From positions 62,001-126,000 of the forward strand of contig JBLDXI010000040.1 in assembly GCA_047495785.1 (NCBI GenBank): a stretch of 64,000 nucleotides of DNA. The letters are read 5' to 3'. The position numbers and the translations under genes were made by a program. This DNA is from Lepidodermella squamata (lineage: Eukaryota > Animalia > Gastrotricha). This document shows, piece after piece, positions 15,595 to 64,000 of the stretch. The notes under the pieces were generated by a model. That model searched no databases, was not told where the DNA came from, and saw only the letters and a program-made list of their open reading frames with translations. How positions within the stretch are numbered: position 1 is the stretch's first letter; each line of letters begins with the position of its first letter.

Positions 15595-16056
15595 CGAAGT
15601 GCACTTTCATACATATTTATGTATGACAAAATTAACTTTCATACATATTTTTTTTCATAAAATCATGTTTTCCAGCCAAACTGTGACTAGGAATTGGTAC
15701 TAGGGGTTAGGGTTAGGTGCCAGGGTTCGGGTTAGGGTTAGGGTTAGGTTTAGGGTTCGGTTAGGGTTCAGGATTAAGGTTAGGGTTAGGAAATTTCGAG
15801 TTTCGGGTTTCTTCGAAGCTCGATTTTTGGGCCCTTGCGCTTCCCCAATAACCATTTCCATGCGGAAAAAATTGACTACGCTTTCGGAACCCCGTTTTTC
15901 TTTGTCATAAACCGAAAACTAGTCATCTGGCATTTCCCTAATGATTTCAGCTTGAATTTAATGAAAAAAAATATGTATGAAAGTTAATTTTGTCATACAT
16001 AAATATGTATGAAAGTTGAAAATTTCATACATATTTATGTATGAAAGTTGGCACCC
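15595..16056. mobile_element. MITE carrying an interstitial (TTAGGG)n-like tract
   Basis: Inverted arms ctttcatacatatttatgtatgacaaaattaactttcatacata at ~15605-15660 and ~15960-16015. 9-bp direct repeat AAACAATAA at 15586-15594 and 16057-16065. Degenerate TTAGGG array at ~15700-15790. Confidence 0.8.
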
Positions 16057-40694: not shown

Positions 40695-40902
40695 TTATTT
40701 GTGTAATCGGTGTTATGCCGATCTCACAAACAAGTCACCCGGGTTCGATCCCTGGTCAGAGCAAGCCTTTTTTAGGCGACACCGGCGTTCAGGTTACTGA
40801 CAGGTTATTTGTGTAATCGGTGTTATGCCGATCTCACAAACAAGTCACCCGGGTTCGATCCCTGGTCAGAGCAAGCCTTTTTTAGGCGACACCGGCGTTC
40901 AG
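40695..40902 (+). repeat. Tandem pair of identical ~97-bp tRNA-derived units (Val-CAC-like)
   Basis: Units at 40695-40791 and 40805-40901. Each has B-box GGTTCGATCCC, a CT-CAC-AA loop-like motif and a T6 run; stems are degenerate. Confidence 0.65.
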
Positions 40903-47611: not shown

Positions 47612-50285
47612 ATGGCATCGCCCTACTCGTTCCAATCAATAGCCGACTTCACGGACGTTAAGCCTTTGTTACGTAGCGAGAAACTCCTCAGAAACGCATA
47701 TTCATGCAGACGCAGTGAGCGCTATCCTTATGACTTCGTCATTAAAAAAGCTAATCTGACCAAGCTGCAGAAGGAATTCGACCAAGACTTTGAAACAATT
47801 AGCCGACTTCTTCGCGAAAAAGTAAGGAATCGATCCATTTTCGTAATAGCCATTGAGAACATTTGAAATGAAAATCAGAAATCCTGTTTTGCTGATTATT
47901 GGATGTCATAACGTCTTTTTATCTTGTTTTCAGAATTTGAAAATGCTAACAATTAGCCACCCAAACATTGTCCGAATATTTGGAACGTTCGAAGGTTCGT
48001 ATGTAATGCTCTCACGTAAAATTAATCCTTAAAATTTAATTCAGAAAAATATCCGGGTAGTGACGTTGCTTGTTTTAACCACCTGGTGATGGAGTTTTGC
48101 AGAGGCGGAAGTTTCGAAACTCTGATCAAAGCTGAGGGTGAACCGATTCGCGAATTTATGCTTCGAATTTGGTCTCGCCAGCTCGTCTCGGCTTTGGATT
48201 ATCTACACAAGCAAGACATTGTCCATGGCAACATTAAGCCAAGCAATATCCTACTATCGAAGAATCAAGGCAGGGTGAAACTGGCGGAGATAGGGATAGT
48301 AGAAACCCTTGACACGTAAAGCCATCATATTTAAGACTTTGCATGTATTTTAGCCGTAATTTTCAGAAAATCAAAAGCGATATCTCTGTTGCAAGGAATG
48401 CTCGGCTATTTGCCTCCTGAAGTATGGAACGGAAATGGCAGTAGACCTTTGTCTCGTGCCAGTGATGTCTGGTCGCTGGGTGTTACGCTATACGAACTCG
48501 CGAACTACAAAAGACCGGTTTGACAATGATTTAACGTTGAAATTTGAGCCTAATTTATTTTACATAGTTCGAACCAATGCACACTATCCAGACGTAAGTC
48601 AGATTAACTACTTCACATATTTCCATACGTGCAGTGTGCGGAGGAGGGGTAGGGGAACGGGGGTTACAGTATCCCCATAGTGGGGGCCCATCTCTAGAGG
48701 TCCGGAGGCCCATCTAAAACCAAAAACCACGAGCTTTGTCAGATGAAGTCGAGGCTGAAAATATCCATGCGTAACCCCCACCTCCGCTGCTCACAGGTCG
48801 CAGGATTCAATCCGAAACTACTCAATCTCGATTATTATGCTTTGTTTAGAGAAGAAGCTCAAGAGTTCGAAGAGTCGCGTGGTTATTCAAAATATATCCG
48901 GGACTTTGTAATGACCATGCTCACGAGAAACGCAGAGGTTCGACCGAGCACTGATCAGCTCGTAAAAAATAGCACTCTACTGAACGCATCAGAAAATATG
49001 GAGGTGAGATTTTTAGCCAGAGATCAGCGTGAGTTTGGTTTCCTCCTCTGTTTTTCAGGCGGACTTGCCGCGGACAACCGCAACGCCACAGCCAGATTCA
49101 AAGGCTGTTGAGGTATTGAATTTTAGGGAAGGTCGATGAGTTTATTGTGATTATATTTGTCAGGAGTTATTTGGCTGCGTTGATAACAACGATAAGTTGA
49201 TATTAAGAAAGCTATTGGAGGATGAAAAGCTCGGTCTCAGCTCTAACTGCAAAGACACAGATGGGTGTCCTTTGCTGAGTATTGCTGCTATGAAGGGCTA
49301 CAATGACATTGTGGAGATCCTTCTCGAGCAATTCAACGCCAATGTAGAGGCTACAGATACAGATGACGATACACCTTTGCACAAGGCCGCTGTTTATGGC
49401 TACGTCGATGTTGTGAAAACACTGGCTGGCGAGTTCAACGCTAATGTCGAGGCTACAGATACAGAGGGCGATACACCTTTGCACGACGCAGCCCGGAGAG
49501 GCAAAGTCGAAGCGGTGAAGACACTGGCTGGCGAGTTCAACGCCAATGTCGAGGCTACCAATAAAGATGGCGAGACACCATTGCACATTGCTGCTTCGAA
49601 TGGCCACTTCGAGATCGTGAAGACACTGGCTGGCGAGTTCAACGCTAATGTCGAGGCTCCAGATACAGAGGGGGATACACCTTTGCACATCGCAGCCTGG
49701 AATGGCCGAGTCGAAGCGGTGAAGTCACTGGCTGGCGAGTTCAACGCCAATGTCGAGGCTACCAATAAATGTGGCTGGACACCTTTGCACAGGGCCGCTT
49801 TTTGGGGCTGCGTCGAGGTGGTGAAGACACTGGCCGGCCAGTTCAACGCCAATTTCGAGGCTACAGATGAATATGGCGATACACCTTTGCACATTGCTGC
49901 TTCGAATGGCCACTTCGAGATCGTGAAGACAATGGCTGGCGAGTTCAACGCTAATGTCGAGGCTACAGATACAGAGGGCGATACACCTTTGCACGACGCA
50001 GCCCGGAGAGGCAAAGTCGAAGCGGTGAAGACACTGGCTGGCGAGTTCAACGCCAATGTCGAGGCTACCAATAAAAGAGGCTGGACACCATTAATGTGCG
50101 CAGTAAAACGCGGCAATCACGCAGTAGTCGATACACTGATCAATGAATTTCGAGCAAATGTCAACACGACCTGCAATGAAGGAAGAACTGCTCTGTATTA
50201 CGCTAATAACTCCCACTTCTTGGTTTTTACAGCCGAGAACAAGCGTAAAACAATTGAAATTCTGATGAAAGCGAATGCTAGATAA
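47612..50285 (+). CDS. Pseudokinase-ankyrin repeat protein copy 1, 682 aa
   Basis: Exons 47612-47821, 47934-47994, 48045-48315, 48367-48517, 48568-48593, 48850-49003, 49059-49112, 49164-50285 total 2049 nt. Motifs HPNIV, LVMEFC, HGNIKPSN, KLAEIG, YLPPE, SDVWSLG. About 10 ANK repeats in the last exon. Confidence 0.9.
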
Positions 50286-50289
50286 CTGT

Positions 50290-51130
50290 GCATAAGGAAA
50301 TGTCAAGAGCAAGAAAAAATAGCCTGGCTGAGCATTTGAGACACGCAACGCTGGGTTTTTGAACAAATGGTATTGATACTAGGGCCGAGTTAGCCCTTCG
50401 ATGATCTGCTTTCTCACATCTCTGATGGAAATATCCATTGTACCCGGCGTTTTTCGCAAAAGACACCATGTGTTGACCACAGCGCTGTTCAGCGGCAGTT
50501 CTACGGCAACTTTGAATTCCCACCGTCGCGCAGTGCTCCGAGTACGGGGGGCAAGGCGGGTAAACAAACCCCCCTGACGTTTGAAAATTTCTGAAAAACG
50601 TAAGGGCCCCCCGTTGATTTGCTAATTTTGGGCTCAAAATGGCTCTATTTACCCCCCTCAGAGCTGGACCTAGTCGGATCACTGCCGTCGCGACTTCCGC
50701 AATGCCGGGTGGTAAGAAGCCATCTGGTCTTGTTTATCGATGCCGCATTTGCAGAGATTGTAGTCAATCAACGCTTTTGGAAGTAATCTGGGATGCCCTG
50801 TACGCTTCGAATGGTCCAAGGATTTTTTATTTTGGTGGAAGTTTGAGAGAAGCATGACTTCCCGTCGATCGAAGAACCGAAAAATCATCAAAGTTCCGAG
50901 ATCATCGGTCGCAGCAGCCAGATTGCCACGTTCGAGGCGTCGCTGCAAGAGTTCCTGAGGGTTGCCGTTTCTGTTCTTACGCAAGGTCCCAATAAAATGT
51001 GTGCTTCGTTTTCATAGCTTTCGAGAAAGCAAATAGGACGTAAAATAGTTGTCAGTGAATAAGATATGACCTCGGTGGAGGTGGTGACGCATAAGGCGCA
51101 TGCAAAGCCTGGCTGCAGGGGCGTATCCAG
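50290..51130 (-). mobile_element. Decayed piggyBac transposase fragment
   Basis: HILFTDNYFTSYLL, FIGTLRKNR, IDYNLCKCGIDKQDQMASY, SAVVNTWCLL. Carries stops and frameshifts and is interrupted by a GC-rich insert at ~50530-50672. Confidence 0.88.
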
Positions 51131-51232
51131 GCGGTTGTTTTGGTTGTAAAACAACTACCAAAATGAATTCTGAAAAACCCCTCTCAACAAGAACTTCCCA
51201 ATTTTCGATCATTTGGCTGATCATTCCTTCTC

Positions 51233-51867
51233 CAGATGCGGTTTTAAGGTTCAAATTAAGCAAAAATAAATGACCGACAATAAGTGAAAAGTGGGGTTTG
51301 GCGAATTTTCTGAATTTTCCAGCAAATCGCAAAGAGTGTTTTCACTCGAATTAGGACCATTCTTGGATTCCAAGGTTTTCTGACTCAGTTTTTCTTGAGG
51401 ATTTGAAATTTTCAAATGTCAGACCTCTACGAGGCTCCCATCCGCCTTAAAATACGGAAAACCTCAGAGCAGCTCTGAAAAGTGTTATTGATTCACGTTG
51501 TCGTAGAGACACTATCTTGATCCAAACACAATTTTTGAATATACAGCGAGATTCCTCACCTCAGATTACCCTTAGACCTTAGAAATGTCAACTGTGCATA
51601 AGAAACTAAAATCAGAATTTATTGCGTGGGGAATTTTGAAATGATGCAATAAAAAACTAAATTTTTAAGCTCGTATTTCACTCGTATACTTTGAAGCCCA
51701 TTTTCTCAGCAACCCTGATGAATATCAACCGCTTTCTTATACCGTTCGACTCCTCGTTAATAGATCTTGAGAGTGGCATCAAAATCTCACTATGTCAAAA
51801 ATTTCGCCAAACCCCACTTTTCACTTATTTTCGGTCAAATGCAAAATCCAAATTTTTCAAGCATCTG
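51233..51867. mobile_element. Old inverted-repeat element (CAGATGC...GCATCTG)
   Basis: tgaccgacaataagtgaaaagtggggtttggcgaa (~51271-51305) is inverted at ~51803-51837. Interior is related to 4965-5200 and 45900-46240. Confidence 0.65.
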
Positions 51868-52196
51868 TATGAAACCATACTTAGCGTTTCATGGTTGGTT
51901 TCACAGCCCAGCTATAACCTGCAATGGCTACTTCTGGGAAACATAAATCGCGGGGCACAGGGTTGTAAATATTTCAGTAAATATTGCGTATGAACGGCGA
52001 TTTTCTCGGTATAAAAGGTTATAAGAGCTTCCTTTCGGAGCAATTTTAGGCTATTTCCAGCTCACATTGCTCTTGTGATTGGCATGAGTGATTCAGCCCT
52101 TGAAAATACCCTCGGGCTACGCTTCGATACGCCCTCGGGCATTTTCAGCGGGCCGAAATCTCGTATCTGCCCTCAACACCGTTAAGGATTCCTTAA

Positions 52197-52291
52197 CTCT
52201 GTACTACGCTAAAAACAGCTTCTGCTATGTTACAGCCGAGAACAAGCAGAAAACAATTGACATCCTGAAAAGAGCGAATAACGCTAGATAA
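52197..52291 (+). pseudogene. Orphan 3' end of another pseudokinase-ankyrin copy
   Basis: LYYAKNSFCYVTAENKQKTIDILKRANNAR* matches the C-terminus of copies 2 and 3; upstream is repeat DNA. Confidence 0.85.
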
Positions 52292-53226: not shown

Positions 53227-55485
53227 ATGACATCGCCCTACTCGTTTCAATCAATAGCCGAGTTCACGGAAGTTCAACCTTTGCTAGGTAGTGAGAAACT
53301 CCTCAGAGACGCGTATTTATACAGACGCGATGGGTGTTACCCTTTCGATTTCGTAATTAAAAAAGCTAATCTGAGCAAGCTGCAGGCGAAATTCAAGGAA
53401 GACTTTGAAACAATTACCCGACTTCTTCGCGAAAAAGTAAGGAATCTATCCATTCTTGCAATCAGTGAGAACATTGTAAATGGTATTCAGAAATCCAGTG
53501 TTGCTGATAACTAGATGTTATGAATCATTTTATCTTCTTTCCAGCATTTGAAAATGGTAAAAATTAGCCACCCAAACATTGTCCGAGTATTTGGAACGTT
53601 CGAAGGTTCGTATGTAATGCTGTCACGTAAAATTAATCCTTAACATTTAATTTAGAAAAATATCCGGGTAGTTACGTTGCTTGTTTTAACCACTTGGTAA
53701 TGGAGTTTTGCGAGGGCGGAAGTTTCGAAACTCTGATCAAAGCTAAGGGTGAGCCGATTCGCGAAGTTAGGCTTCATAGTTGGTCTCGCCAGCTTGTCTC
53801 GGCTTTGGATTATCTACACAAGCAAGACATTGTCCATGGCAACATTAGGCCGAGCAACATCCTACTATCGAAGAATCAAGGCACCGTGAAATTGGCAGAG
53901 TTAGGAATAATCGAAACCTTTGACACGTAAAGCAATCATGTTTAAGAATTTACTAATATTTTGGCCATAATTTTTCAGAAAATCAAAAACGATATCTCTA
54001 TTGCAAGGAATGCGCGCATATTTTCCTCCTGAAGTTTGGAACGGTGCGCCTTTGTCACGCGCTAGTGATGTCTGGTCGCTTGGTGTTACTCTGTACGAAC
54101 TCACGAACTACAAAATACCAGTTTGACAATCAGTTAACGTTGAAATTCAAGACTAATTTATTTATTTAGTTCGACCCGATGCACACAATCTTGACGTAAG
54201 TCGGATCAACTATCATATATTTTCTAAGGCAATGTGCGGAGAAGGGCTAGGGGTACGGGGGTACAGCATCCCCACGGCGGGGGCCCTCGAGAGGTACAGG
54301 GTCCAGGCGTGAAAACCTTAAAAACTATGAGGGAGGCCCTTCTGTCAGGTAAATTCGAGGCTGAAATTGTCCAACAGTAACCTTCACTTCGGGGATCCGA
54401 CTTTATCCACTGCTCACAGGATTCAATCTAAAACCACTGAATCTCGCTTTGCTTAGACATGAAGCTCAAGAGTTCGACGAGTCGCGTGGTTATTCAAAGC
54501 ATATTCGGGATTTTGTAATGGCCATGCTCACGAGAAACGCTGAGGTTCGGCCGATCACTGATCAGCTTGTAAACGATACCTTTCTACTGAACGCACCAGA
54601 GGATGTCGAGGTGAGATTTTTAGCCAGATGCTAAAGATCAGCGTGAGTTTGGTTTCTTCCGTTTTTCAGGCGGACTTGTCCTCGACCACAACGCCGCAAC
54701 CAGATGCAAAGGCTGTTGAGGTATTGTGATTTAGGTAACGTCGATGAGTTTATTGTGATTATGTTTATCAGGAGTTATTTAAATGCGTGCGGAACAACGA
54801 CAAGTTGAAATTAGTGGAGCTACTGGAGGATAAGAAGCTGGGTCTTAGCTCCAGCTGCAGAGACACAGATGGGTGTCCTTTGCTATGTACTGCTGTTCGC
54901 TCAGGCTACAATGACATTATGTGGATCCTTCTCGAGCAATTAAGCGCCAAAGTCGAGACTAAAGATAAATATGGCGATACACCTTTGCACGACGCAGCCT
55001 GGAAGGGCGATGTCGAAATGGTGAAGACACTGGCCGGCCAGTTCAACGCTAATGTTGAGGCTACCAATAACTGGGGCCGGACACCTTTGCACAAGGCCGC
55101 TTACTACGGCAACGCCGAGATGGTGAAGACGCTGGCTGGCCAGTTCATCGCCAATGTTGAGGTTAATGATAAAGGTGGCGATACACCTTTGCACGACGCA
55201 GCCTGGAATGGCCACGTCAATGTGGTGAAGACACTGGCTGGCCAGTTTAACGCCAATGTCGAGGCTGCCAATAATAAAGGCCACACACCGTTAATCGTCG
55301 CAGCGAATCGCGGCGAACACGCCGTAGTCGATACGCTGATAAATTTATTTCGAGCAAATGTTAACGCGGCCTGCAATGAAGGAAAAACGGCTCTGTATTA
55401 CGCTAAAAACTGCTTCTGGTATGTTACAGCCGAGAACAAGCAGAAAACAATTGACATCCTGATAAAAGCGAATGACGCTAGATAA
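53227..55485 (+). CDS. Pseudokinase-ankyrin repeat protein copy 2, 542 aa
   Basis: Exons 53227-53436, 53545-53605, 53656-53926, 53979-54120, 54170-54195, 54457-54610, 54670-54720, 54772-55485 total 1629 nt. HGNIRPSN, KLAELG, about 6 ANK repeats. Confidence 0.9.
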
Positions 55486-57575: not shown

Positions 57576-59838
57576 ATGACTTCGCCCTACTCGTTTCAAT
57601 CAATTGCCGAGTTCACCGAAGTTAAGCCTTTGCTAGGCAGCGAGAAACTCCTCAGAGACGCTTATTTATTCAGTCGCGATGCTTGTTACCCTTACGACTT
57701 CGTAATTAAAAAAGCTAATCTGAGCAAGCTGCAGGCGAAATTCAAGGAAGACTTTGAAACAATTACCCGACTTCTTCGCGAAAAAGTAAGGAATCTATCC
57801 ATTCTTGCAATCAGTGAGAACATTGGAAATGGTATTCAGAAATCCAATGTTGCTGATAACTACCTGGATGTCATAACGAATTTTATCTTCTTTCCAGGAT
57901 TAGAAAATGGTAAAAATTAACCACCCAAACATTGTTCGAGTATTTGGCACGTTCGAAGGTTTGCATGTAATACTATCAAGTCAAACTTATCTCAACGATT
58001 TTGTTCAAAAAGAGGAATACCTAGGTAGTGACGTTGCGTGTTATAAACATTCCATGCATTATTTGGTGATGGAGTTTTGCGGGGGCGGAAGTTTCGAAAC
58101 TCTGATCAAAGCTAGGGGTGATCCGATTCGCGAAGTTAGGCTTCACAGTTGGTCTTGCCAGCTCGTCTCGGCTTTGGATTATCTACACGAGAAAAACATT
58201 GTCCATGGCAACATTAAGCCAAGCAACATCCTACTATCGAAGAATCAAGGCACCGTGAAATTGGCAGAGTTAGGAATAATCGAAACCTTTGACATGTAAA
58301 GCCATCGTATTTAAGATTTTACTTATATTTTGGCCTTAATTTTTCAGAAAATCAAAAACGATATCTCTGCTGCAAGGAATGCGCGGCTATCTACCTCCTG
58401 AAGTATGGGACGGCGCGCCTTTGTCACAAGCTAGTGATGTTTGGTCGCTTGGTGTTACGCTATTCGAACTCGCAAACTACAAAAGACCAGTTTGATAATG
58501 AGTTAACGTTGAAATTCAAGCCTAATTTTTTTTATTTAGTTCGAACCGATGCACACTATCCAGACGTAAGTCGAATTAACTATTAACACATATTTCTATA
58601 GGCTGTGTGCGAAGTACGAAGTGAGGGGTGCTGTTACGATATACGGCATACAGACAAGAAACCCCCCAAAAAATCACAAGAGGGACCCTTTTGTCAGATG
58701 AATTCGAGGCTGAAAATATCCAAGGAAACCCACCGCTTCGAGGATCCTGCATCATCTACTGCTCGAAGCCGATTCAATCTGAAACTATTCAATTTAGAAT
58801 ACTATGATTTGTTTAGACAAGAAGCTCAAATGTTTGACGAGTCTCATGGATATTCAAATTATATCCGGGATTTTGTAATGGCCATGCTTACGAGAAACGC
58901 CAAGGATCGACCGAGTACTGATCAGCTTCTGAAAAATATATTTCTACTGAAAGCACCAGAGGATGTCGAGGTGAGATTTTTAGCCAGAGATCAGCGTGAG
59001 TGTGTTTCCCTCCTCTTTGTTTCTCAGGCGAACTTGTCCACAACCAAAACTCAACCAGATGCAAAGGCTGTTGAGGTATTGTTTTACGTACCGTCAATGA
59101 GTTGATTGTGATTATATTTATCAGGAGTCATTTGATTGTATGGAGAGCAACGATAAGTTGAAATTAATGAAGCTACTGGAGGATAAGAAGCTGGGTCTTA
59201 GCTCCAGCTGCAGAGACACAGATGGGTGTCCTTTGCTATGTACTGCTGTTCGCTCAGGCTACAATGACATTGTGTGGATCCTTCTCGAGAAATTAAGCGC
59301 CAAAGTCGAGACGAAAGATAAATATGGCGATACACCTTTGCACGACGCAGCCTGGAAGGGCGATGTCGAAATGGTGAAGACACTGGCCGGCCAGTTCAAC
59401 GCTAATGTTGAGGCTACCAATAACTGGGGCCGGACACCTTTGCACAAGGCCGCTTACTACGGCAACGCCGAGATGGTGAAGACGCTGGCTGGCCAGTTCA
59501 TCGCCAATGTTGAGGTTAATGATAAAGGTGGCGATACACCTTTGCACGACGCAGCCTGGAATGGCCACGTCAATGTGGTGAAGACACTGGCTGGCCAGTT
59601 TAACGCCAATGTCGAGGCTGCCAATAATAAAGGCCACACACCGTTAATCGTCGCAGCGAATCGCGGCGAACACGCCGTAGTCGATACTGTGATAAATGAA
59701 TTTCGAGCAAATGTTAACGCGGCCTGCAATGAAAGAAAAACGGCTCTGTATTACGCTAAAAACTGCTTCTGGTATGTTAAAGCCGAGAACAAGCAGAAAA
59801 CAATTGACATCCTGATAAAAGCGAATGACGCTAGATAA
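57576..59838 (+). CDS. Pseudokinase-ankyrin copy 3; TAG at the start of exon 2 (pseudogene, or rescued by a shifted acceptor)
   Basis: Exons 57576-57785, 57898(or 57904)-57958, 58013-58295, 58348-58489, 58540-58565, 58817-58970, 59028-59075, 59125-59838. TTG>TAG at 57901-57903. Confidence 0.75.
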
Positions 59839-61160: not shown

Positions 61161-61991
61161 TGGCCGGTCGAATTTTGTCGGTCGAAGACGCGCCGAGAAA
61201 CCAGTCATTGTCGCCTCTAACGTTGCTATGGCTAGTCGCTGAATTTCAGTTGCTGCTCAAAACCGCGATTCCGGAGGAAAAACCGGATCTGCATCGCGAC
61301 AGCTGCCAGCAAGAGATTTCGACGACCTCGTTTTTCGTCTCATTTTGTCATAATATCTTTGCTTTTGCACGTGAAATTGCTGTTAAGTAAAATTGAGATT
61401 TTCGTTGTTTTTGTGACTTCCCTTAGATTTTCGAGAAAATGCATCTGGGGGTTTCGAGGTCAATTTCGAGCAAAATCCTGCCAAAATTTGTGGCAGTTTC
61501 AAGCCATAGAGAAATTCTTGGTTGCCAAAGAGAAATTCATTGTAGCCATTGTAAATTAAATTTCCCAAATTTTACCATAATCCCTTATTCCCATCTATTC
61601 ACAGCTCTTATTCTCAACCGAGTATGTATAGTGGTTGCGCTATCTCAGAAGATCCACAGTTCGAGCTCGCCTCCTTTGGGCTAGTTTCTTTATATTTTAA
61701 TTTTTTAAAAGAATTAACGATGGCGACAAAATGACGGAATCACGAACCTGTTTCTATTTATAAGTTGGACTTTGATCCTGCATAGCCGGACTATAATGCA
61801 ATAACACAAAACCGTCTTATGACCAGATTTTCATACCAGTGGCGTATGAAAGAAGCCGTCGCCCGCGCAAGCTTCTTATCATCGTAACGGCAAGAAACAT
61901 TGCTGCTGATATTGTATGCTGTCTATCACTTACATAGAACCGGCCTTATTGCGCTTTTTCATTTTGAGAATACATTTTTAGCTGCTTGGAG

Positions 61992-62712
61992 ATGACTTCA
62001 CCCTACTCGTTTCAAACAATTGCCGAGTTCACCGAAGTTAAGCCTTTGCTAGGCAGCGAGAAACTCCTCAGAGACGCACATCTATGCAGACGGGATACGT
62101 GCTACCCCTACGACTTCGTAATTAAAAAAGCTAATCTGAGCAAGCTGCAGGCGAAATTCAAGGAAGACTTTGGTACTATTACCCGACTTCTTCGCGAAAA
62201 AGTAAGGAATCTATCCATTCTTGCAATCAGTGAGAACATTGGAAATGGTATTCAGAAATCCAATGTTGCTGATAACCACTTGGATGTCATAACGAATTTT
62301 TATCTTGTTTTCAGGATTTGAAAATGGTAAAAATTAACCACCCAAACATTGTCCGAGTATTTGGCACGTTCGAAGGTTTGCATGTAATACTGTCATGTCA
62401 AACTTATCTCAAAGATTTTGTTCCAAAAGAGGAATACCTAGGCAGTGACGTTGCGTGTTATAAACACTCCATGCAATATTTGGTGATGGAGTTTTGCGGC
62501 GGCGGAAGTTTCGAAACTCTGATCAAAGCTGGGGGTGGGCCGATTCGCGAAGTTAGGCTTCGAAGTTGGTCTCGCCAGCTCGTCTCGGCTTTGCATTATC
62601 TACACAATCAAGGCATAGTCCATGGCAACATCAGGCCGAGCAATATCCTACTGTCGAAGAATCAAGGCACCGTGAAATTGGCTGACTTGGGAATAATCGA
62701 AAACTTTGACAC
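61992..62712 (+). CDS. Pseudokinase(-ankyrin) copy 4, exons 1-3 only within the window
   Basis: Exons 61992-62201, 62315-62375, 62430-62712. HGNIRPSN, KLADLG. Intron 3 is interrupted by repeat DNA from ~62745 to the window end. Confidence 0.8.
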
Positions 62713-64000
62713 GTAAAGCCATCATAATTACGATTTTACATGTACAGGTATTCCTACATACGCATGGTAAAATTTTGCCATTGGGAAATTTGATTTCTCC
62801 ATGGTTACAATGAATTTCTCTATGACAACCAAAATTTTTCTATGACATGAAACTGTCCCAAATTTGGGCAGCATTTTGCTCAGAATTAGCCTCAAAACCC
62901 CCCATGAAACGCAGTTTCTCGATAATTTTAGGAAAGTCACTAAAACAGCGAAAACCTCAATTTTACTTAAAAGCAATTTCACGTGCAAAAACAAAAGACA
63001 AAATGAGGCGAACAACGATGTCGTCGAAATCTCTTGCTGGTAGCCGTCGCGATGCCGATCCGGTTCTCCCTCCGAATTCGCGGTTTTGAACAGCAACGGA
63101 AATTCAGCCACCGGCCATAGCAACGCTAAAGCCGACGACGACTGGTATCTCGGCGAGTCTTCGATCTTCGGCAAAATTGACCCAAATCCATGATTAGTTT
63201 CCGCCGCAACCTGGATACCATTTTGCAGCGAGCGGATGGCTTCTTTTATTGTCAGTCATCCAAACGCCGCGATGTTGACGCATTGATTTCTGTGCGAACC
63301 CAGCTGGCAGGTGACCGATTTGAGTGGCTTCTTCGAAGCAAAGATTTGTTCGTTTCCAGACTCGATCGAACCAAGGCGACGGATAATCTTGGGGCTTGAT
63401 ATCGGCTGTTCCATGAGTCTTGACCACTGATGATTCGGCCAGCCGGAGAGCATGAAGCTTTCGACGACGAATGACGGTTGACCAAAAACCAAGTTGCAAA
63501 CAAGAAAAAAATCGCCGAATGAAAAGTGTTTTTCGCTTTCAAACGAAGAATTGGTTTCGTGAAATTTTAAGTTGGATGTTTTATTTTCTCGAAATTATTA
63601 TCCTGAAATCACCCCTATGTACCAATTGCACCCTTTTGGAAATGGTTTGGCTGCGCCAAACTCGCTCGGGGTTTCAGATCGGGGGGAAATTTCATTTCTC
63701 TATGGCTAGCTATAGAATAATCCTTTATTCCTACATGCGCATGGTACAGTTTTGCCATTGGGAAATTGAATTTATCTATGGCTTGAAACTGCACCAAAGT
63801 TGGGCAGCATTTTGCTCGAAATTGACCTCGAAACCACCCAGAAAAAGCATTTTCTCGAAAATCTTAGGAAAGTCTCAATTTTATTTCAAAGCAATTTCAC
63901 GTGCAAAAATGGAATTGTGACAAAAAGAGGCGTAAACGAGGTTGTCGAAATCTCTTGCGGCAGCCGTCGCAATGATGCAAATCCGTTTTCCCCTACGGAT

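Follow-up and report, generated by a model that had tools for sequence, protein, structure and literature searches.

Gene structure and domain architecture

The window analysed here is a stretch of 64,000 nucleotides from the genome of the gastrotrich Lepidodermella squamata (contig JBLDXI010000040.1, positions 62,001 to 126,000), and is part of contig C40 of a eukaryotic assembly with introns of 50–110 bp. It carries a tandem cluster of pseudokinase-ankyrin genes, one of which, copy 1, is the main subject of this study. Copy 1 is a seven-exon gene on the + strand, and the analysed stretch 49350–50170 is the core of its last exon. The predicted protein is approximately 690 residues long and consists of a kinase-like domain without the catalytic aspartate, followed by 10 ankyrin units. 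It is presumably cytosolic, with no signal peptide.

Pfam searches were made exon by exon, and the 246-residue open frame of a paralogue (L033:4340-5077; 3e-20 against Pkinase) was used as a stand-in for the N-terminal part of the kinase. Exon 1 (47612–47821) encodes a degenerate kinase N-lobe, without a glycine-rich loop and with the VIKK lysine motif present. Its GTAAGG donor and its frame were read directly, and a spliced contig of a related organism is joined at 47821. Exon 2 (47934–47994) carries the motif HPNIVRIFGTFE; its acceptor and donor were both read, and the loose end of a public contig at 47994 runs on into the letters from 48045, where exon 3 begins. Exon 3 (48045–48315) encodes the kinase catalytic core (Pkinase, 2.4e-16), and exon 4 (48367–48517) the C-lobe with its PPE and DVWSLG motifs (Pkinase, 4e-7; contig joints at 48516/48517, with the exon ends also read from the sequence). 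The kinase domain ends in exon 5 (48797–49003), for which a frame and splice sites were read; its 5′ boundary is predicted, and the exon is conserved in copies 2 and 3. Exon 6 (49059–49112), for which both splice sites were read, is a micro-exon encoding a linker of 18 codons. Finally, exon 7 (49164–50285) encodes an N-cap unit, seven internal units and two divergent C-terminal units, and ends with the stop codon. The contigs from the related organism skip introns at 47821/47935, at 48517/48850 and on both sides of the micro-exon, and a homologous gene is therefore spliced and transcribed in that organism.

In exon 3, HGN replaces the HRD motif and AEIG replaces DFG; the close family has AE(I/L)G. 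The catalytic aspartate is thus absent from the kinase fold of copy 1, which is therefore predicted to be a pseudokinase. The best matches in a structural database are MAP4K3 and LKB1 for the pseudokinase, and GCN2, NEK1 and ULK for its active relatives. A RIPK4/ANKK1-like kinase class was considered but is not supported, as neither RIPK nor DAPK was among these best matches.

The ankyrin array

Exon 7 matches the Pfam families Ank (E = 1.8e-76) and Ank_2 (1.3e-72), and matches AnkR/AnkB at 3e-116. A word-based protein search with the ankyrin exon returned only generic ankyrin proteins, at no more than 49% identity. A single-sequence AlphaFold model has a predicted local distance difference test score above 93 across the units, and shows helix pairs with a strict 34-residue period, in which the inner helix spans unit positions 4–11 (with 10 and 11 at its end) and the outer helix positions 14–23. 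Foldseek superposes the model on the repeats of AnkB with a template modelling score of 0.77 and a root-mean-square deviation of 1.9 Å, and it also superposes on designed ankyrin repeat proteins (DARPins). Each unit is 34 residues long, and alignments place the extra residue, relative to canonical 33-residue repeats, in the loop between helix 2 and the hairpin. Going by these alignments, we regard the array units as a lineage-specific ankyrin subclass of 34 residues.

At the nucleotide level, Tandem Repeats Finder reports a period of 102 with 7.2 copies and 77% matches at 49332–50068, and also a period of 306 at 84% matches. In-frame units start at 49263+102n, and the seven internal units, u1 to u7, occupy 49365–50078. 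The ankyrin exons of copies 2 and 3, at 54787–55485 and 59140–59838 (both + strand), contain three internal units each; counting the cap units, the arrays comprise 10 units in copy 1 and 6 in copies 2 and 3. The seven internal units of copy 1 have in common the framework TPLH..AA..G....VKTLAG(E/Q)FNANVEA. The variable residues are K/VY, D/RR, I/SN, I/WN, R/FW, I/SN and D/RR in copy 1, and D/WK, K/YY and D/WN in copies 2 and 3. A preliminary description of the locus had listed this constant framework and these residues; the in-frame unit alignment confirmed the framework and matched the variable residues exactly. It had also correctly given copy 1 four more units than its two neighbours.

An identity matrix and a codon alignment, read together with class-specific synonymous markers, sort the units into three classes. 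Class A comprises u2, u4, u7 and units 1 and 3 of copy 2; class B comprises u1, u3 and u6; and class C comprises u5 and unit 2 of copy 2. The order of classes is therefore B-A-B-A-C-B-A in copy 1 and A-C-A in copy 2. Unit 4 (49671–49772) has class-A synonymous markers throughout. The earlier suggestion that this unit is chimeric rests on the single Ile codon at unit position 7, which is class-B-like but differs in its third base, and is not demonstrable.

A recurrence of about 140 bp noted previously proved to be an exact repeat of 143 bp at an offset of 510. Its first copy, at 49423–49565, covers the tail of u1 plus u2, and its second, at 49933–50075, the tail of u6 plus u7, both on the + strand. 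It is extremely unlikely that the number and order of units in copy 1 were misassembled, perhaps with chimeras from whole-genome amplification. The assembly is consistent with multiple-displacement-amplified DNA of very small animals (PMC11660948), and short-read contigs do break inside the array. However, the array is only approximately 0.7 kb long, HiFi reads average 13 kb at 83x, and no chimeric contig was found (PMC11660948). Furthermore, a 193-nt contig from an independent run is identical to 49930–50122, with zero differences, and so reproduces the u6-u7-u8 junction exactly; the reading frame is unbroken, and arrays of this kind are found in 13 paralogues. A "skip" joint of 180 bp in a public contig, from 49853 to 50034, was dismissed as repeat noise, being no multiple of 102 and having a side of only 26 letters.

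Recombination within and between arrays

Repeat conservation in copy 1 is no more than moderate: its internal units are on average 73% identical, with a synonymous difference between units of 0.24, and 10% of unit pairs reach an identity of 0.85, compared with 44–50% of pairs in the paralogues C17a, C11d and C29c. Within this background two pairs of near copies stand out. Units u7 and u2 are 97% identical, and their sole difference consists of all three bases of the last codon, which marks a junction at that point. Units u6 and u3 are 96% identical. The two pairs are 5 and 3 units apart respectively, and at least two exchanges are therefore needed to account for them; this spacing excludes a single block duplication as the source of the extra units.

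The closest paralogue of copy 1 is a sister gene on contig C29 (L035). Across 1.3 kb of kinase sequence, exons and introns together, identity between the two genes is 94.7%, and in the cap units it is 90–93%, yet no pair of internal units is more than 86% identical. By contrast, the sister's own units, v1 to v4, are 89–100% identical to each other, and v2 and v3 are the same. Silent divergence between copy 1 and its sister is approximately 0.07 outside the array, while it is 0.24 among the units of copy 1 and 0.05 among those of the sister. The array of the sister must therefore have been largely re-amplified after the two genes split, and by the same comparison the two near-exact unit copies in copy 1 also arose after the split.

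Exchange between genes is shown by copies 2 and 3. These are 89–91% alike overall, but are identical over 374 bp (54961–55334 and 59314–59687), a tract that spans all of their internal units. At 10% divergence, the chance of such an identity is approximately 8e-18, and the tract is the result of recent gene conversion between the paralogues. For the units of copy 1, C29c, C17a and C11d, the nearest relative is mostly found in the same gene. The data thus support the view that units are exchanged by recombination, both inside arrays and between paralogues.

What is seen amounts to unequal exchange and gene conversion of the ordinary germline kind, acting over evolutionary time. We found no sign of somatic or programmed diversification: the exon is complete and open, and repeat searches place the units only inside paralogous genes. 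The preliminary description had proposed a recombination-driven specificity generator. Part of this stands, namely the exchange of units within and between arrays, array lengths of 3 to 24 units, and rapidly changing face codons (see below). A dedicated generator is not supported. In its full form, such a generator would be hypervariable between individuals, as in Podospora het-d/het-e, or would rearrange somatically, as in the lamprey variable lymphocyte receptors (VLRs). The array does have a sequence signature like that of fungal NOD-like receptor (NLR) repeats with high internal conservation (PMC4986451), and some of the events are very recent, as seen in the exact tracts of 143 and 374 bp and in the identity of v2 and v3. 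Against this, the germline gene has an intact frame, no partial donor cassettes flank it, and a single conversion event homogenised two paralogues, leaving copies 2 and 3 with identical arrays, so that recombination at this locus does not by its nature generate diversity. We therefore regard a true generator as very unlikely.

Selection on the binding face

DARPins are consensus designs, with randomised positions 2, 3, 5, 13, 14 and 33. To guard against circularity, the test set was fixed a priori as these six positions, which correspond to unit positions 5, 13 and 14 → 2, 10 and 11, and 33, 2 and 3 → 31, 33 and 34. Measurements were made on 44 disjoint nearest-neighbour unit pairs, drawn from 110 units in 14 arrays, and used counting methods only.

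In this set, the nonsynonymous difference (pN) of the face codons is 0.196, compared with a synonymous difference (pS) of 0.116 and with 0.055 at the other codons (face against synonymous, Fisher p 4.6e-6). A comparison of 0-fold with 4-fold degenerate sites, which is free of site-counting bias, gave a consistent picture: 0.181 for the face, 0.091 for 4-fold sites and 0.047 for the other 0-fold sites (face against 4-fold, Fisher p 2.8e-6). The other codons thus change at about half the neutral rate and the face at about twice that rate. Within face codons, 4-fold sites differ at 0.082, against 0.092 elsewhere, although the numbers are small. The 4-fold sites of the face are thus no older than those elsewhere, which favours faster replacement at the face over old lineages that survived while their flanks were homogenised.

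Taken individually, the fast unit positions are 2, 10, 11, 32, 33 and 34 (DARPin positions 5, 13, 14, 1, 2 and 3), with ratios of 1.5 to 2.8, while unit position 31 (DARPin 33) has a ratio of 0.89. The earlier statement that the variable positions are those randomised in DARPins is partly correct: it holds for unit positions 2, 10, 11, 33 and 34 (DARPin 5, 13, 14, 2 and 3), and fails for unit positions 7, 13 and 16, which vary in copy 1 and yet belong to the DARPin framework. Array by array, the face ratio is 1.4–4.5 in 11 of the 14, and approximately 1 in three old arrays where silent sites are saturated (pS 0.43–0.56). In these old arrays the framework has been kept despite the saturation, which indicates purifying selection at the level of the protein, and rules out DNA-level constraint or codon bias as the reason for the constant framework. 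The framework is therefore under purifying selection, while change runs at roughly twice the neutral rate at the hairpin tip (unit positions 32–34 and 2) and at the end of the inner helix, in its final two residues (10 and 11). The preliminary description had named a dN/dS of 1 or less at the variable sites among the findings that would refute its proposal; family-wide and by counting methods, the face codons in fact change at about twice the synonymous or 4-fold rate, and that refutation fails.

On balance, copy 1 probably contains a germline-evolving binding module, belonging to a pseudokinase-ankyrin family in which units are remodelled and the face is diversified by selection. Several observations weigh against this. 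The signal comes from the family as a whole; copy 1 by itself gives 0.41 and 0.22, from 21 unit pairs that depend on one another. Codon differences of several bases also arise at recombination junctions, where they are scored as substitutions and inflate the count. Unit position 7 is not elevated across the family (0.85), and nor is position 13. Some arrays are still colinear (copy 2 with C29b, and C11a with C11c), and turnover is therefore episodic. Finally, between copy 1 and its sister the pN/pS outside the array is approximately 0.7, a value that comes from only about 14 synonymous changes; this young pair is thus weakly constrained, and one copy may be decaying.

The last of these points also fits an ordinary fast-turnover family without adaptive meaning, in which the face would be an unconstrained surface and copy 1 a young, weakly constrained duplicate. 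The same explanation would accommodate the transposase remnant and the dead gene fragment that adjoin copy 1 (see below), the low average similarity of its units, and the ratio of about 1 in the old arrays. Relaxation, however, caps the ratio at 1, whereas the face codons chosen a priori have ratios of 1.7 to 2.0 in independent pairs (p ~3e-6 to 5e-6) and the others ~0.5; in addition, open frames are retained in all ankyrin exons examined. We consider neutral turnover to be somewhat unlikely, and prefer the selected binding module.

Gene family and neighbourhood

Genome-wide searches, which covered an assembly of 121 Mb in 151 contigs, found 150 matches to the kinase exon and more than 170 to the ankyrin exon (from 2283 first-look candidates). 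At least ~60 of the kinase matches, counted by eye, have an ankyrin array on the same strand 1–4 kb downstream. The ankyrin exons examined all have open frames, of 230 to 968 residues. This lineage-specific family includes 13 close relatives, with kinase exons 71–88% identical. Of these, C40 carries five, C29 three, C17 two and C11 at least three. The number of internal 34-residue units per array varies from 3 to 24. The longest array, with 24 units, is on C17 (L036 2951-5409; G000:C17:545150-547608); it lies in an open frame of 968 residues and is 90% self-identical. It is made up of about four unit types in irregular order, and shows the most extreme internal repeat conservation of the subfamily.

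Forty more distant kinase exons were also compared. HRD and DFG are both kept in 22 of these. A further 15 group into a second subfamily that also looks inactive: they have HRN or HLN, carry ITTSN where others have IKPSN, and mostly show ADLG; this subfamily is located on G000 contigs C34, C36 and C78 (loci L043-L057). The remainder have HRN with DIG (one exon) or HRA with GFG (two exons). Judging by these motifs, the family includes both catalytically competent-looking and dead kinases, and loss of the catalytic residues seems to have occurred repeatedly in the kinase-ankyrin superfamily.

Within the window, the cluster extends to a copy 4 (61986–62716 and past the window end; L031, ankyrin frame from ~4011). 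Its kinase exons have ADLG and not AELG, approximately 3 kb of repeat-derived sequence separates them from the ankyrin exon, and several of its units are stretched to 35–39 residues by insertions in the hairpin.

Just downstream of copy 1, on the minus strand at 50679–51332, two open frames match DDE_Tnp_1_7, a piggyBac-type transposase (2.8e-12 and 1.8e-4). They belong to a decayed piggyBac-type transposon inserted at this point, and contig depth in a public run is very high, as for a repeat family. Between copy 1 and copy 2, at 52088–52291 (+), is an orphan fragment that encodes nothing but the final ankyrin cap, with the tail TAENKQKTIDIL, of a gene like copy 2, and is the remnant of a dead gene. 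A contig from the related organism fuses 50211 directly to 52231.

Two further features lie elsewhere in the window. A perfect 110-bp tandem duplication at 40695–40902 contains a tRNA-like GGTTCGATCCC box. ARAGORN found no tRNA in the duplicated element, which may be a fragment of a tRNA-derived short interspersed nuclear element. At 15704–15790 there is an interstitial telomere-like tract of degenerate (GGGTTA)n, with 14 copies and 76% matches.

Proposed mechanism and significance

We propose that near-identical 102-bp units take part, in the germ line, in unequal exchange and gene conversion, both inside one array and between neighbouring paralogues, and that units are added, deleted and overwritten in this way. 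Selection would favour novelty in the groove formed by the hairpin and the inner helix, which is the canonical ankyrin binding surface. Specificity could then shift both through point substitution, with diversifying selection acting on the groove, and through whole units being gained, lost or replaced. The pseudokinase domain would probably serve as a scaffold or signalling partner rather than as an enzyme. We conjecture that the most likely class of ligand is a fast-changing partner, for example a pathogen or a selfish element.

A more far-reaching interpretation is that the family forms an intracellular recognition repertoire in an animal without a NOD domain. The shuffled, selected arrays would be sensors of pathogens or non-self, polymorphic between individuals in the number and order of their units, and the dead kinase a signalling scaffold, convergent with the sensors of fungal NLRs and found in a little-studied phylum. 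We put this forward only as a speculative and on present evidence unlikely extension of the proposed binding module. If the proposed mechanism holds, a microscopic animal would have built up a large family of natural binders in which the scaffold is fixed and the face variable, diversified on a pseudokinase chassis by the route known from fungal immune receptors, where units are shuffled and the groove is under selection. This would widen the set of animal innate recognition architectures, and would offer a testable convergence with fungal NLRs and the Nek-ankyrin proteins of Giardia. It would also provide protein engineering with a natural 34-residue ankyrin consensus and a catalogue of tolerated face residues. 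Should the ligands turn out to be housekeeping partners, the family would still serve as a clear textbook example of how a repeat protein evolves in concert.

Comparison with known systems

In somatically assembled repeat receptors of the VLR type, the germline gene is incomplete and lies between banks of partial donor cassettes. Copy 1 differs from these in its complete and open germline exon, and in having its units only inside paralogous genes. RIPK4/ANKK1, DAPK1 and the ankyrin-pseudokinase ILK resemble copy 1 in combining a kinase or pseudokinase with an ankyrin array in one cytosolic chain. However, they are single-copy and slowly evolving, with old, diverged repeats, and in ILK the order of the domains is reversed.

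With DARPins, the array has in common a consensus-like framework and a solenoid fold, and is 38–42% identical to DARPin chains. Five of the six fastest natural positions are positions randomised in DARPins. The natural unit differs in being 34 residues long, with one extra loop residue; moreover, of the DARPin positions, 1 is fast in the natural units and 33 is not, and copy 1 varies at positions that belong to the DARPin framework.

The Nek-ankyrin kinases of Giardia (Manning et al. 2011, PMC3218828) share the architecture found here. They too form a massive, lineage-specific family, and their N-terminal kinase domain, in many cases catalytically dead, precedes an array of variable length (1–26) built from a lineage-specific ankyrin subclass. 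Related members gain or lose repeats, and array length varies likewise here. The authors of that study stated that the association of kinase and ankyrin was seen in no other species (PMC3218828), and the genome paper that matches this assembly in its statistics does not mention ankyrin (PMC11660948). The differences are that Giardia is a protist of an unrelated lineage, that its repeats are of the TALM type where those described here have TPLH with a 34-residue FNANVEA loop, and that no analysis of selection on the binding face was reported for it (PMC3218828). The Giardia kinases belong to the Nek family; the kinase here may or may not, since by best matches its active relatives come closest to GCN2, NEK1 and ULK and the pseudokinase itself to MAP4K3 and LKB1.

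The closest parallels in process are with the ANK, TPR and WD repeats of fungal NLR (STAND) proteins, such as Podospora HNWD/het-e and het-d (PMC4986451, PMC1805685); the process seen here is the one reported for fungal NLR repeats of high internal conservation (PMC4986451, PMC1805685, PMC2873952). Both systems have near-identical tandem units, which are gained, lost and shuffled within and between paralogues, and both place an N-terminal signalling or effector domain before a C-terminal variable repeat sensor. Dyrka et al. (2014) mapped the selected sites of fungal ANK repeats to the inner helix and the β-hairpin (PMC4986451), the same binding surface for which we find positive selection, here family-wide and by counting methods. 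They also found that highly conserved repeats make up only 0.8% of metazoan ANK, TPR and WD repeats (PMC4986451). The systems differ in that the N-terminal partner here is a pseudokinase and the host an animal. Pfam searches of the copy 1 exons found no NACHT or NB-ARC domain, only families of the Pkinase and Ank types, and with a mean unit identity of 0.73 copy 1 falls short of the identity above 85% over at least 100 residues that is used for the fungal repeats.

The gene of copy 1 is thus a member of neither the fungal NLR nor the Giardia Nek-ankyrin family, because it has no NOD domain, lies below the 85% identity criterion, and has repeats that are not of the TALM type. Nevertheless, the copying, loss and overwriting of units, together with fast-changing binding positions, is a pattern already known from fungal immune receptors.

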